Part shown: positions 8,065 to 25,989 of the stretch, in pieces
Position numbering within the stretch: position 1 is the first letter of the stretch
How the letters are laid out: each line of letters opens with the position of its first letter
Assembly (NCBI GenBank): GCA_002269645.1
Contig: NIVC01000865.1
Location: forward strand, 49,162-110,400
Reading direction: 5' to 3'
Source of the DNA: Macrostomum lignano
Taxonomy: Eukaryota
Length of the DNA: 61,239 nucleotides
Notes under the pieces: generated by a model
The model's input: only the letters and a program-made list of their open reading frames with translations
What the model was told of the DNA's origin: nothing
Database searches by the model: none
Made by a program: the position numbers and the translations under genes

Positions 8065-9143
8065 TAGATAGATAGATAGATAGATAGATAGATAGATAGA
8101 TAGATAGATAGATAGATAGATAGATAGATAGATAGATAGATAGATAGATAGATAGATAGATAGATAGATAGATAGATAGATAGATAGATAAGTAGATAGA
8201 TAGATAGATAGATAGATAGATAGATAGATAGATAGATAGATAGATAGATAGATAGATAAGTAGATAGATAGATAGATAGATAGATAGATAGATAGATAGA
8301 TAGATAGATAGATAGATAGATAGATAGATAGATAGATAGATAGATAGATAGATAGATAGATAGATAGATAAGTAGATAGATAGATAGATAGATAGATAGA
8401 TAGATAGATAGATAGATAGATAGATAGATCGATAGATAGATAGATAGATAGATAGATAGATAGATAGATAGATAGATAGATAGATAGATAGATAGATAGA
8501 TAGATAGATAGATAGATAGATAAGTAGATAGATAGATAGATAGATAGATAGATAGATAGATAGATAGATAGATAGATAGATAGATAGATAGATAGATAGA
8601 TAAGTAGATAGATAGATAGATAGATAGATAGATAGATAGATAGATAGATAGATAGATAGATAGATAGATAGATAGATAGATAGATAAGTAGATAGATAGA
8701 TAGATAGATAGATAGATAGATAGATAGATAGATAGATAGATAGATAGATAGATAGATAGATAAGTAGATAGATAGATAGATAGATAGATAGATAGATAGA
8801 TAGATAGATAGATAGATAGATCGATAGATAGATAGATAGATAGATAGATAGATAGATAGATAGATAGATAGATAGATAGATAGATAGATAGATAGATAGA
8901 TAGATAGATAAGTAGATAGATAGATAGATAGATAGATAGATAGATAGATAGATAGATAGATAGATAGATAGATAGATAGATAAGTAGATAGATAGATAGA
9001 TAGATAGATAGATAGATAGATAGATAGATAGATAGATAGATAGATAGATAGATAGATAGATAGATAGATAAGTAGATAGATAGATAGATAGATAGATAGA
9101 TAGATAGATAGATAGATAGATAGATAGATAGATAGATAGATAT
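8065..9143. repeat. (GATA)n microsatellite, ~1.08 kb, with GATC and GATAAGTA interruptions
   Basis: Direct reading. GATC near 8427 and 8819; AAGT interruptions recur throughout. Confidence 0.98.
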
Positions 9144-10863
9144 AGTTACATTCATAAACGCAGGTGCACTATTAACCAGTTAATATTTATTATTGCGACA
9201 AAGTGGGGAACAACACTGAGGAAAAAGAAACTCAAGGCATCTTGCCATAAAGCATGAATACTTGCTCGCATGGATGCATCTCATCTTCAGAGACATCGAT
9301 TATCGACCGCCATTCTGCTGCAAGCCTGAGTGTGAGACACTTCTGCAGCACTCTTAAGTAAAAGCCGCAGGTGTGCGAGACTCAACTTGAGTCAGGAATT
9401 CTGCTCTGCTCTTTGCAGAAGAAATAAGGTGTGAGAAATTCCTTTTGTCGCAGTTGCTGTTGCTGCTGCTGGCTTCGGTCGATGTATCCAGTCTGTCTGT
9501 TTTGAGCAGCCCCTTAAGGATACTAAACCAACAGCTTGTGACTGTCTGAAGAAAACTCTAGTGTCTGAAAATCGTGCAGTTCACTTGGGTGCTTTCATTT
9601 GCACTTGTGACTAACTTGCTGGGATGCTACCAGTAGGAGCAACCATCCACCCAATGATTTACAGCAGGGCCAACAGTCTACCAAGGCGTGTGATTTCCCG
9701 CTTACGGCCCCCGTTGCTTTGCCCCAGTTAAAGACTGCTTAAAACTGATTGAAAAAACTACGGCTCGTAAAAGCGAAATCTGCAGGATGTACGCTTACAC
9801 GTGTATATTTTTTGTACTTTTTGCAGAAAATACATGCAAAATCAAATTAGTGACGCGATAGACTAAGCTAGTAGGCTACGCTCGTAGTTGACTGATCCGT
9901 GGCACTGGGTTTTCGTCCTTCAAATCTTTAAAATTTGATTCAAAATCAATAACATCAAGTGAGCCTTGCTTAATAATAATTGGTGCAACGAGGTGCGAGC
10001 AAGGGCTACTAGCTATTGGTTCATCATAAGGTGCAGCTGCAACTGTTCAAGTTCAAGAAGTTCAAGAAAGTTTCTTGCAACAAAGCGAACAGAGCAACTA
10101 CCGCAGTACAGTAATCGGCAGTCGACGTATTCTTCCCCGATGCCGTCATCAAGGACCACTTCTAGTTAACAGTAACTTCGTGTGGTCCTTGAACGTCATC
10201 TTCCCAATCGACGGAAGATTTTGTAGGCCAGGATGAAAATTCCGGCAACAACTACGACAATAACAGCGATGGCGAGGAATGCCACGATGAATGGCGACAG
10301 TAGGGCCACGGCTATTATTAGTAGCAGAACAATGCCGACTGAAAAGAGAGGGAGCAATAAATCCGGTTGACAATGAGTCATAAATCAGGTAATGATTGTA
10401 CCAGATAATTTACGATTGATCTTCGACTAAAAAATCCACCTAGACTCAGTGAAAACTCTCACGCAGTCGAAGGCCTCGCATTGTGCGCCTGAGCGCGGGT
10501 CGGTCCCTCTGGTAGATGTAGCGGCATCCGAACACGCTTAGCGCGTCAGTGTGACCGCCAAAGATTGACTCGACGTGCTGTTGAGACATCAGCAAGTAGC
10601 AGCTCAACTCCGGCGACCAGCTCTCGCCGCAGCGATAGCAGAAGACGTGCGAGCACTCGAGACAGCGGCTGCAGAACTCTTCTTGCTGGTGCTGCGCCGG
10701 TTGTAGCTGCTGTTGCTGCTGCTGTTGCTGCTGCTGGTGATGCAGATCGAGGCCCAGCGGCAGTGGAACCAGGGCGGAACATCGGGGACACTGTCGGGAT
10801 CGGGACAGCTGCAGTCCACTGACCGGATCGGTGACCATCTCGGTGGTCATTTCCTCTAACCGG
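9144..10863 (-). pseudogene. Duplicated 3' part of the RNF217-like gene (end of exon 3, last intron, TM exon, 3' flank), copy 1
   Basis: Near-identical to 22035-23755. Identity ends at ...tttcctctaaccgg (10863), where the LINE begins. Confidence 0.9.
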
Positions 10864-23087: not shown

Positions 23088-25989
23088 TCATCTTCCCAAT
23101 CGACGGAAGATTTTGTAGGCCAGGATGAAAATTCCGGCAACAACTACGACAATAACAGCGATGGCGAGGAATGCCACGATGAATGGCGACAGTAGGGCCA
23201 CGGCTATTATTAGTAGCAGAACAATGCCGACTGAAAAGAGAGGGAGCAATAAATCCGGTTGACAATGAGTCATAAATCAGGTAATGATTGTACCAGATAA
23301 TTTACGATTGATCTTCGACTAAAAAATCCACCTAGACTCAGTGAAAACTCTCACGCAGTCGAAGGCCTCGCATTGTGCGCCTGAGCGCGGGTCGGTCCCT
23401 CTGGTAGATGTAGCGGCATCCGAACACGCTTAGCGCGTCAGTGTGACCGCCAAAGATTGACTCGACGTGCTGTTGAGACATCAGCAAGTAGCAGCTCAAC
23501 TCCGGCGACCAGCTCTCGCCGCAGCGATAGCAGAAGACGTGCGAGCACTCGAGACAGCGGCTGCAGAACTCTTCTTGCTGGTGCTGCGCCGGTTGTAGCT
23601 GCTGTTGCTGCTGCTGTTGCTGCTGCTGGTGATGCAGATCGAGGCCCAGCGGCAGTGGAACCAGGGCGGAACATCGGGGACACTGTCGGGATCGGGACAG
23701 CTGCAGTCCACTGACCGGATCGGTGACCATCTCGGTGGTCATTTCCTCTAACCGGCGTTTCACAATCGGGCAGTGCAGGCCCACGTGTGACCGGGTGCCG
23801 CACAGGTAGCAGAAAACAACCTGGCACAGATCGCAGCGAGTTTCCCAATCGTAGGGAGTTCGGCGCACTGACGTCTCAGGCAGGGCAACGAAGTAGCGAC
23901 AAGACGGGCCGGGGCAGGGCCGAGCTAGCGGCACTGAACGATTGAACTCTTCCCAGAAGCGAAACTGTCGACAGAGTCGAGCGTTCCGGGAACGCTGGGC
24001 AGCTGCCTCGGCGAGGTCCAGGGGAACGCAGTCACCAGCGTGGTGTGGTGCTCTGCAGGCGTAACAGAATTCGTAACCGCAGCGCGAGCAGATGACGTGG
24101 TTGCAGCCGGAGTCCTTCTCAATCAGGACGCAGCATCGGGGGCAGCGTTGAGCTCGTCGTAGAATCTGCCCGTTCTCCGAATAGGTTACATTGCACCACT
24201 GCGCCAGCAGCTGGTCCTGGCTGCGCCGGAAGTTGGCGCAGCTGCGGTCTGCGTGGAGCGGAGCGTGACAGTCGAAACACCAGGCCTGTGGATTTGGTAA
24301 TTGTGTGTTTGTAAATGAAGATGGTGAGCATATGTTGTTGCACATGCAGGAAAGTATTCTAACCAAATTGGTTTTATTGTTGGTCGTGCAACGGCTTGGT
24401 GAGTCTAATGCACTCCAGAGCTGGTATACAAGGTCAATGCAGTTACCTGAAAGCAACGCTGGCAGGCAACTGTGCAGGCAACTGTGGAGACATCGTCAGT
24501 GTCTTCACCGCTAGGATTTGGTACCGACTCGGCACCAGTAGTTGGCTGCTGTTGAAGGGCCCCCATCGGGGGCTGCGTCTGCTGCGAAGGCGTTGGTGGT
24601 GGTCGAGGCGTCAGGAGGCCGCAGTGTGGGCAGGTCCGGCTGTCCGAGCCCACCGCCTGGTCTGCCAGCCGACGATCAAGCAGCGTCAGCAGCTGCCGGT
24701 TAAAAATCGGACCATTGTCGCCATAGTAACCACTGCAGCAGTTGGCCAACAGAAAGCGCAGCTGAGCAACGCTGAAAACGGCCTCGGCAGGGCAGAGCGG
24801 ACACGGCGGCGGCTGCGGCCGGCCCTCCAGCAGGCGCGAGCGAGCATGGTCAGCGAGGCATGCAAGGCAGACCCGCTGGCGGCAGCAAGGAGTCAAAGCC
24901 AGTGGTCGTCCGGGCTCCAGACAGACTCGATCGCAGGTACCGATGGCCAGGACTCCCAGTCCCTCTGGCAGAGACAGTCGGGCTGTCAACTCATCAGCGA
25001 GAGCTGTTGTCCACAACGACAGCCAGCAGTCGACATCGTTCAGTGCAGCGCGCAGGCACAGATGAAAGATTCGGCCGCTGCCAGCACGGTCACTGCCGTC
25101 GGTTTCAGCGTCGTTTCCAATGTCATCGGAATTGACATCCGCTTGAATGGCTGCCTTGAGGACAGCCAGACGGTCTCGCTGGCCAGCCGTGTCGGCCACA
25201 GCGGAGACACACAGCAGATCTATGAGCAATCCGGACTCGAAACCGGCGAACCGACGATTTTGGCGGTGCCGCAGGCGATGAAACTGTCGCCAGCAGAGGC
25301 GACGGGACCAGGCGGTGAACCTCTGAGCCGCTTCTGCGGCTGCCGCTGCTGTTACTGCAGCTTCTGTGTCGTCGTTATCCGCAGCAGTGTCAGCATAGAA
25401 CCGACTGCCTAAAGATAAAATGTTGGACTGCATTCGTTTGGTTGGAAAAATATTTTTATGATAGCTTGAGAAGCGTCTGAAAAATGCACTATTAAACTTT
25501 GTGACGGTTGGTAAGGTAACCAAGCACAGAACTCGTTGTGAGTCTATTGACGACCCGGCATCATGCTGTACAGGACACGCTTCATAGACCAACCCCAAGA
25601 AGTTTAAACTTAAATAATTCACTGAGCATACCTAGCAGAGCCCGAACGATCCGCCACGGGCCCATCGATCCGGAGATTGACAGGCTGCTATTGTCAGCGT
25701 CACTTAACTCTTCCGCGTCGTCCTGCACGTCTGCCAAATCACCTGGCATGTGTTTCTGGTAGTCGCCCAGCTGCCCATCATCAGCTTGGCTGTCTTTGGC
25801 GGGGCGATCGCGCTTCTCCCCGTCGTCATCGTCATCGTTGCCAGTACTTTCCGCGTCGGAAGCGGCCGACGATGCATCGCTGGCCTCCATGGCGATGTTG
25901 ACGTGACCGCAGCCTCCGGAAGGCCCGACCGACTTCGGGCCGCTCAGCTGCTGCAGCCGGCCCTTCAAAGCTGTCTGAAGTTGCTCCAT
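23088..25989 (-). CDS. RNF217: RNF217-like RBR E3 ubiquitin ligase with an extra IBR/RING2-like pair and C-terminal TM (797 aa)
   Basis: Exons 25989-25632, 25408-24447, 24285-23355 and 23230-23088 have GT-AG boundaries and compatible phases (2394 nt). RING1-like CDRVC..CC..C..C, IBR, RING2 CPRC..IEKDSGCNHVIC. The C-terminal FGGHTDALSVFGCRY..RPALRR..RG plus hydrophobic tail matches the RNF217 signature FGDHxSxLSIFGCKY..RPxLRR..RG as I recall it. Confidence 0.82.

Follow-up and report, generated by a model that had tools for sequence, protein, structure and literature searches.

The window analysed here, 61,239 nucleotides of Macrostomum lignano DNA, contains an alternating series of host and LINE segments with the layout X1-Y1-X2-Y2-X3, in which the copy number is read from the assembly alone. 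X denotes about 2.05-2.06 kb of host DNA, composed of ~330 bp of (AGAT)n microsatellite and a segment A of 1.72 kb with the 3' end of an RBR E3-ligase gene, and Y denotes a 4.4-kb LINE, so that the tandem unit measures 6.45 kb. The features are listed below with the evidence for each, and with the strand where one is assigned.

1725-2623, minus strand: comparator, an 869-bp piece of a related LINE that is truncated at its 5' end (2608-1740) and flanked by a target-site duplication (TSD) (TSD comparison, protein comparison).
8065-9142: microsatellite array 1, (AGAT)n, about 270 units; X1 includes the terminal ~349 bp, from about 8794 onward (TRF, run-length fingerprint).
About 8794-10863: X1, first host-segment copy, consisting of the terminal ~349 bp of array 1 and A1 (9143-10863) (self-BLAST, junctions, array fingerprint).
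10864-15259, plus strand: Y1, 5'-truncated LINE of 4396 bp; two single-C deletions (13804, 14673) break ORF2 (copy comparison, Pfam domains).
15260-17310: X2, second host-segment copy, array 2 (15260-15588) and A2 (self-BLAST, array fingerprint).
17311-21708, plus strand: Y2, second LINE copy of 4398 bp; ORF1 remnant to 17896, ORF2 17893-21603 (Pfam domains, ORF comparison).
21709-23755: X3, third host-segment copy, array 3 (21709-22033) and A3, running on into the rest of the gene (self-BLAST, junctions, ORF continuity).
23338-25622, minus strand: RBR-type E3-ligase gene (ORF continuity, domain and protein searches).

Self-BLAST of the window aligned 8802-17310 with 15260-23755 over 8516 columns at 99.6% identity and 8818-10863 with 21709-23755 at 99.3%; other DNA-level matches to X or Y were not found elsewhere in the window. 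At the transition from A to Y, both units read ...CTCTAACCGG followed directly by TCTGACTCAG, and at the transition from Y to the array both read ...GCTAAGTCAAGTA followed by AGATAGAT. In the third copy of A, which lacks a LINE, ...CTAACCGG continues with CGTTTCAC into the remaining exon. The two Y and three X copies with the same junction strings in every unit thus represent n internal segments with n+1 flanking repeats. A previous sequence-only reading had proposed a doubled LINE with a host duplication of ~2.06 kb and one common 5' and one common 3' junction for both LINE copies, and the alignments and junction strings bear this out. Since both LINE copies have the two junctions in identical form, they represent one insertion that was later copied.

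The exon ORF of the host gene (23338-24456) is unbroken across 23755/23756 (...CPIVKR/RLEEMTT...), a splice donor (CAG/GTAAC) is located at about 24446, and the upstream exon ORF extends to 25622. Segment A includes the last 139 codons of the gene and about 1.3 kb downstream. As had been claimed, the gene is intact in the last copy, where its ORF continues through X3 into the remaining exon. Of the earlier designation "RNF217-like", the assignment to the RBR/IBR E3 ligases is supported by domain and protein searches, which did not confirm it at the level of RNF217; in the protein search, the sole match of the host exon was a distant RBR protein with 41% identity.

On the plus strand of Y, Pfam searches detected Exo_endo_phos_2 (E=5.4e-20), Exo_endo_phos (E=6.5e-08), RVT_1 (E=1e-30) and RNase_H (E=5.1e-15) domains. 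The endonuclease, RT and RNase H domains agree with the former identification of Y as a LINE, and by this domain content it can be classified as an APE-type non-LTR retrotransposon with an RNase H domain. In Y2, ORF2 is intact (1236 aa), with the three domains contiguous and an additional C-terminal Cys/His motif. Compared with an M. lignano copy, 527 of 537 aligned residues (98%) of the Y2 ORF2 are the same, the mismatches lying almost all at segment ends. The Macrostomum EN-RT-RNase H LINE group (UniRef M. lignano P0003-P0005; L001 from Logan run ERR14788467) has the same domain order as Y and shares the 3'-terminal motif CCCTGCAGCTAAGTCAA with it. Because its ORF2 is only 61% identical, L001 belongs to a different subfamily. 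Exact look-ups in public assemblies with the intact ORF2, the 151-aa ORF1 remnant and a 173-aa chimeric ORF of exon and antisense LINE sequence returned nothing.

Furthermore, both ends of the element were located. ORF1 is present in Y as a 195-codon remnant, which gave no match in Pfam or in the protein search, shows weak similarity to the C-terminal part of L001 ORF1 (E=2e-04) and matches an ORF1-like stretch in P0010. The 5' end of Y lies inside ORF1: LTQLTILRCEER has its counterparts in ...GLHQLTILRCEEGK of P0010 and in residues ~266-277 of the L001 ORF1. By this comparison Y is predicted to be truncated at its 5' end within ORF1, and the ...G-L-H-Q... of P0010 suggests a possible GG overlap at the 5' junction. 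At the other end, Y, the fragment at 1740 and full-length L001 share conserved 3'-UTR blocks up to CCCTGCAGCTA(A/T)GTCAA, after which the flanks of the three elements diverge. Y is thus an RNA-derived copy with a complete 3' end; it has no poly(A) tail. We considered the (AGAT)n sequence as the LINE's own tail and rejected this, as elements of the family terminate in ...GTCAA(G)(TAAGTCAAAG), AGAT repeats are absent from the ends of both relatives, and the interruption pattern of array 1 is present in arrays 2 and 3. The comparator fragment, with 51% amino acid identity to the ORF2 of Y, is flanked by a 15-bp TSD, GCCACCAAGAGCCAC, at 2623-2609 and 1739-1725. Both copies of the TSD that had been reported for it were found, and 15 bp is, from this one element, an ordinary TSD in the LINE group.

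The left edge of X was mapped by the run lengths between array interruptions. Arrays 2 and 3 read (7 or 6)cgat(19/21)aagt(18)aagt(19/18)aagt(15/14), and the sole part of array 1 that they match is its terminal block, ...(14)cgat(21)aagt(17)aagt(21)aagt(17). Array 1 has its cgat/aagt block twice, as a ~392-bp higher-order repeat of its own. That arrays 2 and 3 reproduce the end of array 1 only had been noticed before and is upheld by the run-length comparison; it places the left edge of X1 at about 8794, close to the previously suggested start of the duplication near 8795-8800, and inside an otherwise unbroken (AGAT)14 run.

The host segment adjoins both LINE ends in direct orientation and without filler. 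The 3' end of Y meets the upstream edge of X, (AGAT)7-cgat..., and the downstream edge, ...CTAACCGG, meets the 5' end of Y. Both target edges are also present in uninterrupted form, as the (AGAT)14 run through about 8794 in array 1 and as the exon ORF across 23755/23756. This order of breakpoints is that of a target-site duplication, not of a deletion. An ordinary short-TSD layout at the exon junction would read LINE directly followed by ...CGTTTCACAATC.

Two further ways of arriving at such an arrangement were weighed against the junctions. A misassembly could have joined, via shared LINE sequence, an exon insertion and a separate microsatellite insertion from the same family, and/or haplotypes with and without the insertion; with near-identical copies of a young family in a redundant genome (PMC5730564), an assembler could switch inside the LINE. 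However, this requires two insertions, an empty allele and several wrong joins, and the junctions it predicts, LINE 3' end to CGTTTCAC and (AGAT)n to LINE 5' end, are not found in the window, making it very improbable. X itself was rejected as a mobile element: one edge falls in a microsatellite, the other in a coding exon, and the window has no further copies of it.

LINE reverse transcriptases are known to switch templates. A switch from LINE RNA to an antisense host transcript, giving an X-Y retrocopy in the array, can formally yield X-Y-X, as can an X-X tandem duplication that was entered later by the LINE exactly at its junction. Both take more events than a TSD with two breakpoints, and we regard this pair as very improbable: the former requires unspliced antisense RNA over intergenic DNA and the exon as well as two breakpoints coinciding in one microsatellite, while in the latter the LINE must hit exactly one nucleotide position with no target bases lost or gained.

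We favor one target-primed insertion with a TSD of ~2.06 kb, after which the X repeats would have undergone unequal homologous exchange, and assign this reading a probability of roughly 0.6. The identity of the LINE, its complete 3' end, the shared junctions and the geometry of the duplication support the single retrotransposition that had been put forward from the sequence. We infer the succession of nicks, the route of fill-in and the exchange as follows. A young RNase H-bearing non-LTR retrotransposon of Macrostomum would have retrotransposed once, with a putative bottom-strand nick inside the (AGAT)n array, seven units ahead of the last CGAT interruption. From the 3'-OH at this nick, reverse transcription would have been primed close to the LINE RNA's 3' end; an AG overlap of 2 nt would be compatible with priming at ...GUAAG. 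Synthesis of the cDNA presumably halted in ORF1, with the cDNA then joining a top-strand end ~2.06 kb downstream in the RBR E3-ligase coding exon, and fill-in of the staggered ends would have duplicated the 2.06 kb between them, giving X-LINE-X. As the duplicated segment begins at the exon breakpoint and reaches beyond the 3' end of the gene, the right-hand copy is still a whole gene. Unequal homologous exchange between the 2-kb direct repeats, on sister chromatids or homologues, would then have led to X-Y-X-Y-X; excision of an X-Y circle and its re-integration would be an equivalent alternative to the exchange. 3' transduction was rejected as a source of the second unit, since transcripts would have had to start precisely at the truncated 5' end and to re-insert precisely at the boundary of X.

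The 2-kb duplication may have come about by a distal second-strand nick, by break-induced replication or by sister-chromatid bridging. In place of a staggered-nick TSD, the event may have been a tandem duplication based on DNA repair or replication, perhaps independent of the endonuclease; such routes have been proposed for L1-associated tandem duplications of 1-10 kb and larger (10.1101/2024.12.14.628481, PMC7058536). The 3' junction lies in a long microsatellite, which is fragile and slippage-prone, and the three 3' junctions seen in this LINE group have no motif in common (n=3 sites), so that an endonuclease consensus is not demonstrable there. On the other hand, the LINE has its full 3' end, as is usual after ordinary TPRT, and the final sequence is the same as in the target-primed insertion, so that nothing in the window favors a repair or replication route, which we consider distinctly unlikely.

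Outside the microsatellite, only four differences separate the copies: one substitution and three single-C homopolymer indels. The sole substitution, A versus G at 17204, is private to A2, and in the C-run at 10134 A2 equals A3. The remaining two indels are the frameshifts of Y1 that are absent from Y2, and the Y copies differ by these only. For a mosaic origin of the middle repeat X2 there are two informative sites in A (the C-run at 10134 and 17204), the array run lengths not being decisive. Because the copies are nearly identical and the 1236-aa ORF2 of Y2 is intact, both the insertion and the copying appear to be very recent.

The same small number of differences bears on whether X-LINE-X with its ~2-kb TSD is real and the second unit is an assembly artefact, either from a repeat loop walked twice or from stacked haplotypes or homeologues of a polyploid, redundant genome. 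Of the four differences outside the microsatellite, three are single-C homopolymer indels, a kind of error that typically persists in PacBio-CLR assemblies, and the published M. lignano assemblies are PacBio-CLR/Canu/Pilon builds, reported to be redundant, with 180-312 Mb of duplicated sequence (PMC5730564). However, the three arrays differ at almost every sub-run and always by whole 4-nt units, as expected from slippage in distinct copies, and A2 has its private substitution, whereas a double loop walk from the same reads would tend toward identical copies. In addition, the unit sits in the middle of the 61-kb window, away from a contig end. Thus, an artefactual second unit is unlikely, though its chance is appreciable.

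A kilobase LINE TSD is not a new phenomenon, and the novelty implied by the sequence-only reading was too high. L1 TSDs above 1 kb and up to ~6.8 kb are on record (Servant et al. 2017, PMC5223499), where Gilbert 2002/2005 and Symer 2002 are cited for further kilobase cases; 1-10 kb tandem duplications with L1 at the junction have been "regarded as large TSDs" (10.1101/2024.12.14.628481), and a single L1 that bridges a tandem duplication has been described (Rodriguez-Martin et al. 2020, PMC7058536). As at our locus, the human insertions comprise a LINE that is truncated at the 5' end but complete at the 3' end, flanked on both sides by direct copies of 1-7 kb of target DNA; the cause proposed there is a break of the second strand at a large distance from the first nick, and the authors note that large TSDs can duplicate exons and later recombine (PMC5223499). 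Those insertions, however, were engineered in cultured cells, mostly NER-deficient, and in HeLa cells TSDs above 100 bp occur in <10% of insertions, whereas the Macrostomum locus has an RNase H-bearing LINE without poly(A) tail in a flatworm assembly, presumably germline, and was further amplified. The L1-bridged duplications likewise have one LINE at the duplication junction, with its 3' end on the side of the first nick, but they are somatic (tumours, induced-L1 clones), were detected from reads and reach 22.6 Mb; break-induced replication or sister-chromatid bridging are the mechanisms proposed for them (PMC7058536, 10.1101/2024.12.14.628481). The literature search found no case of a natural germline non-mammalian kilobase LINE TSD, which is an absence of match and not proof. 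The locus is thus a clean natural example of a known outcome, here in an invertebrate assembly and presumably from the germline.

Tandem arrays of LTR retrotransposons with shared LTRs (LTR-internal-LTR-internal-LTR) arise by unequal recombination. As at the present locus, n internal segments alternate in them with n+1 direct repeats and the junctions are the same in each unit, the outcome expected from unequal exchange between kilobase direct repeats. In contrast to LTRs, which belong to the element, the repeats here are host DNA duplicated by the insertion.

Overall, if confirmed by reads, the locus would be a natural, sequence-resolved case of a non-mammalian LINE insertion with duplication of about 2 kb of target DNA, a kind of event so far documented mainly in repair-deficient cultured cells and tumours. 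At the locus itself, the gene would have stayed whole although a coding exon was hit, because its 3' end falls within the duplicated segment; truncated gene copies (RING2 part and 3' UTR) fused to antisense LINE sequence would have arisen, and the kilobase direct repeats would promptly have given further tandem amplification. M. lignano lines could also be assayed easily at this site for empty alleles and for alleles with one or two units. That this RNase H-bearing LINE family, or Macrostomum as a whole, repeatedly produces kilobase TSDs in the germline, e.g. by second-strand cleavage that is only loosely coupled to the first nick, is at present a quite doubtful extension. If it held, insertions would duplicate exon-containing segments and leave genes intact even when a coding exon is hit, would be reversible by recombination and would act as seeds for tandem arrays of kilobase period, and could in this way contribute to the unusually repeat-rich and redundant genome of M. 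lignano.

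Self-comparison of the whole window detected one long direct repeat besides the simple-sequence arrays. Positions 8802-17310 align with 15260-23755 over 8516 columns at 99.6% identity, and 8818-10863 with 21709-23755 at 99.3%; the repeat families D10-D13 show a spacing of 6445-6449. For an 8.5-kb match of this quality a chance explanation is unnecessary. The region has the order X1-Y1-X2-Y2-X3, where X is a duplicated host segment, Y a 4.4-kb LINE and X-Y the 6.45-kb unit.

Copies of the host segment (X) and the LINE (Y)
about 8794-10863, host segment X1
10864-15259, + strand, LINE copy Y1
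15260-17310, host segment X2
17311-21708, + strand, LINE copy Y2
21709-23755, host segment X3

Each X consists of ~330-350 bp of (AGAT)n followed by a unique part, A, of 1721-1722 bp. The A/Y junction (...CTCTAACCGG/TCTGACTCAG) and the Y/array junction (...GCTAAGTCAAGTA/AGATAGAT) are the same in both units, and beyond the third A the sequence continues uninterrupted (...CTAACCGG/CGTTTCACAATC). Self-comparison and junction strings thus confirm the doubled layout of LINE plus host duplication described in the sequence-only reading. Since both junctions and the truncation point are held in common, Y1 and Y2 are copies of one insertion, not of two.

The host ORF at 23338-24456 (- strand, 372 aa) has three IBR-type Pfam matches, resembles the RING2/IBR modules of parkin and ARIH1 and is unbroken across 23755/23756 (...CPIVKR/RLEEMTTEM...), as expected from the earlier claim that the host gene stays intact in the last copy. 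A canonical donor (CAG/GTAAC) lies at about 24446, and a further upstream exon ORF extends to 25622. A is thus host DNA, comprising the final 139 codons of a gene for an RBR E3 ligase and ~1.3 kb past its stop, up to the microsatellite. The IBR-type matches support the former label "RNF217-like" only to the level of an RBR E3 ligase. In the truncated copies A1 and A2, the reading frame runs on into the antisense LINE (173-aa ORF). A search of the protein database returned no close relative of the host exon. An imperfect (CTG/CAG)n tract in the duplicated exon (10684-10743, with copies at 17131-17190 and 23576-23635) accounts for ten consecutive glutamines of the RBR protein, which lie between the point of insertion and the final RING2-like motif. 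X was rejected as a mobile element, as its edges lie in a microsatellite and a coding exon and self-comparison found no further copy of it elsewhere in the window.

Array 1, whose end belongs to X1, and the microsatellite parts of X2 and X3 (arrays 2 and 3) were encoded as the numbers of AGAT units between successive interruptions.

Run lengths of the three arrays
Array 1: (31)aagt(16)aagt(27)aagt(14)cgat(22)aagt(19)aagt(20)aagt(18)aagt(14)cgat(21)aagt(17)aagt(21)aagt(17)
Array 2: LINE-(7)cgat(19)aagt(18)aagt(19)aagt(15)
Array 3: LINE-(6)cgat(21)aagt(18)aagt(18)aagt(14)

Arrays 2 and 3 match only the terminal block of array 1, in agreement with the interruption fingerprint noticed before; the match is assigned to this last block because it is contiguous with A. 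Seven units separate the left edge of the duplicated segment, at about 8794 within the (14) run, from the final CGAT (8822). The arrays differ in length only by whole 4-nt units, as expected if separate copies underwent slippage. Unrelated to the duplication of X, array 1 (8065-9142) contains a ~392-bp higher-order repeat, cgat(~22)aagt(~19)aagt(~20)aagt(~18)aagt(14), twice in tandem, which means an earlier unequal exchange or slippage inside the microsatellite itself.

Y2 carries a single ORF of 1236 aa (17893-21603, + strand) with Pfam matches to Exo_endo_phos_2 (5.4e-20), RVT_1 (1e-30) and RNase_H (5.1e-15), followed by a C-terminal Cys/His motif. Y1 equals Y2 minus two C's in C-runs (13804, 14673), and the two losses account exactly for its two frameshifts. 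The database proteins most similar to Y come from Macrostomum lignano; in the shared LINE segment 527 of 537 residues (98%) are identical to one of them, with mismatches almost all at the segment ends. On the basis of this identity the LINE family is young, and the window belongs to M. lignano or a very near relative. L001, a full-length relative from a Logan assembly, has an ORF2 61% identical to that of Y and the order 525-aa ORF1, ORF2 and ~115-nt 3' UTR ending in ...CCCTGCAGCTAAGTCAAAG. The 3' ends of Y1, Y2, L001 and a related 869-bp fragment (2608-1740, - strand) were aligned. The conserved blocks in all of these elements reach CCCTGCAGCTA(A/T)GTCAA and the flanks then diverge, so that Y ends, within about 2 nt, at the 3' terminus of its family (CCCTGCAGCTAAGTCAA); GTCAAGTAAG is common to Y and the fragment. 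The first codons of Y, LTQLTILRCEER, match an internal ORF1 stretch (...GLHQLTILRCEEGK in the database entry P0010) and correspond to about residues 266-277 of L001 ORF1. As they fall inside ORF1, Y appears to lack the 5' UTR together with about half of ORF1. Such a combination of 5' truncation and complete 3' end is characteristic of target-primed reverse transcription (TPRT). The description of Y as a 5'-truncated LINE is thus upheld by its endonuclease, reverse transcriptase and RNase H domains, the family 3' terminus and the start within ORF1.

The related fragment, an ordinary member of this LINE group 7 kb away, shares the 3'-terminal motif. Because of its in-frame stops and only 51% amino acid identity to Y, it is an older insertion of a different subfamily. 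Its previously noticed 15-bp target-site duplication (TSD) is clean (GCCACCAAGAGCCAC at 2623-2609 and 1739-1725).

TPRT attaches the LINE 3' end to the downstream side of the first nick (bottom strand) and its 5' end to the upstream side of the second break (top strand); if the second break lies downstream of the first, the interval between them is duplicated. Here, the upstream edge of X, in the array, follows directly on the 3' end of Y, and its downstream edge, in the exon, directly precedes the 5' end. The Y/X breakpoints are those of a duplication with an interval of ~2.06 kb. Both target edges also exist uninterrupted, in array 1 through about 8794 and in the exon through 23755/23756, and only two breakpoints are needed for X-Y-X. 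The junction ...CAAGTA[AG]ATAGAT would allow a 2-nt overlap of the RNA (...GUAAG...) with an (AGAT)n primer. An insertion of Y exactly at the junction of an earlier X-X duplication, or a template switch to antisense host RNA yielding a chimeric retrocopy, would each require extra coincidences and are the least probable of the explanations considered.

The best explanation, to which we assign a probability of roughly 60%, is one TPRT insertion with a ~2.06-kb TSD, followed by unequal exchange. The insertion would have produced X-Y-X, a state with 2-kb direct repeats 4.4 kb apart, and unequal homologous exchange between the X repeats would lead directly to X-Y-X-Y-X. Alternatively, an X-Y circle might have been excised and re-integrated, giving the identical sequence. 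Within A only two sites are informative, the C-run at 10134, where A2 agrees with A3, and 17204, where the variant is private to A2; so few variants are not enough to show the middle X as a mosaic. This interpretation, already put forward in the sequence-only reading, is supported in every test that the sequence allows. The follow-on amplification resembles LTR-internal-LTR-internal-LTR arrays, a known tandem form of LTR retrotransposons. Sister-chromatid bridging or break-induced replication, both proposed for L1 (10.1101/2024.12.14.628481; PMC7058536), might have acted here, perhaps at a break already present in the microsatellite, and would leave a product that sequence does not distinguish from that of TPRT and exchange; we consider this route unlikely.

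When the microsatellites are set aside, the differences among the three A copies and between the two Y copies amount to a substitution at 17204 and three indels of a single C in homopolymers. The indels (13804, 14673, 10134) are without exception losses from unit 1 (X1-Y1), and two interrupt ORF2 in Y1; they may be genuine mutations that inactivated Y1, or errors left in the long-read consensus. Likewise, the near-identity of the units means either that the events are very recent or that some differences are consensus errors. Published M. lignano assemblies (PacBio-CLR/Canu/Pilon) represent a repeat-rich genome with extra chromosomes and contain 180-312 Mb of duplicated sequence (PMC5730564). 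Exact matches to the intact ORF2, the ORF1 remnant and the 173-aa chimeric ORF were absent from other public assemblies. Given this redundancy and the predominance of homopolymer indels, the first step might be real and the second unit an assembly artefact; however, the whole-unit array differences and the private substitution at 17204 argue for physically distinct copies, and we regard an artefact as rather improbable, if the likeliest of the alternatives. A misassembly of two insertions and empty haplotypes predicts junctions that are absent from the window and is very improbable.

The right half of the window (30809-61239) is packed with long minisatellites, which fits the high tandem-repeat content reported for this genome (PMC5730564).

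Minisatellites and short interspersed repeats
30809-31313, minisatellite, 32-bp unit
32923-33591, minisatellite, 21-bp unit
33680-33932, minisatellite, 18-bp unit
34459-36477, minisatellite, 20 bp x ~104
37259-37918, minisatellite, 21-bp unit
43466-45021, minisatellite, 14/28-bp unit
49596-50190, minisatellite, 17/23-bp unit
55758-56477, minisatellite, 12 x 60
57129-59061, minisatellite, 19 x ~100
60674-61239, minisatellite, 24-bp unit, running off the window end
5593-5693, 6497-6602, 38228-38309 and 54481-54582, short interspersed repeat, four copies

A near-perfect hairpin (37097-37252; 63-nt arms, 92% complementary, 30 nt apart) directly precedes the 21-bp minisatellite at 37259. The short interspersed repeat has a tRNA-like head (CTAGTGGTTAGAGCGTCGGAC...GGTCGGGGGTTC), and two of its copies are paired in inverted orientation, where the adjacent 126-nt arms (5694-5819/6384-6509) are 98% complementary. 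ARAGORN called no tRNA genes in the window. The repeat may be a tRNA-derived SINE or a foldback element. Further host ORFs are a serpentine GPCR-like gene split in two adjacent ORFs (3573-4774, + strand; weak Srsx/Srw/7tm_1 matches) and an ORF at 27476-28099 (- strand) with a weak, sub-threshold WW-domain match.

The novelty implied in the sequence-only reading is set too high, as kilobase LINE-1 TSDs have been published (PMC5223499; 10.1101/2024.12.14.628481). In NER-deficient human cells most recovered LINE-1 insertions had TSDs >100 bp, 18 of them >1 kb and tabulated up to 6765 bp, as compared to <10% of L1 insertions with TSDs >100 bp in HeLa; the same paper points out that such duplications can include exons and that recombination between the repeats may follow (PMC5223499). 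Tandem duplications of 1-10 kb with L1 at the junction, from induced-L1 clones and tumours, were "regarded as large TSDs" (10.1101/2024.12.14.628481), and one L1 bridged a 22.6-Mb tandem duplication (PMC7058536). For the human germline, long-read data show TSDs concentrated at 10-20 bp (PMC12350158). The Macrostomum locus is thus a further case of a phenomenon known in kind. It differs from the human L1 examples in its RNase H-bearing element without poly(A) tail and with the 3' motif ...AAGTCAA, in the flatworm host and apparent germline setting, and in the secondary amplification. A limited literature search found no natural non-mammalian kilobase LINE TSD. A single, read-unverified locus in a difficult genome, it is also a tidy, testable natural example with instructive consequences: the gene was spared by an insertion into its exon, truncated copies of it arose, and tandem amplification followed immediately.
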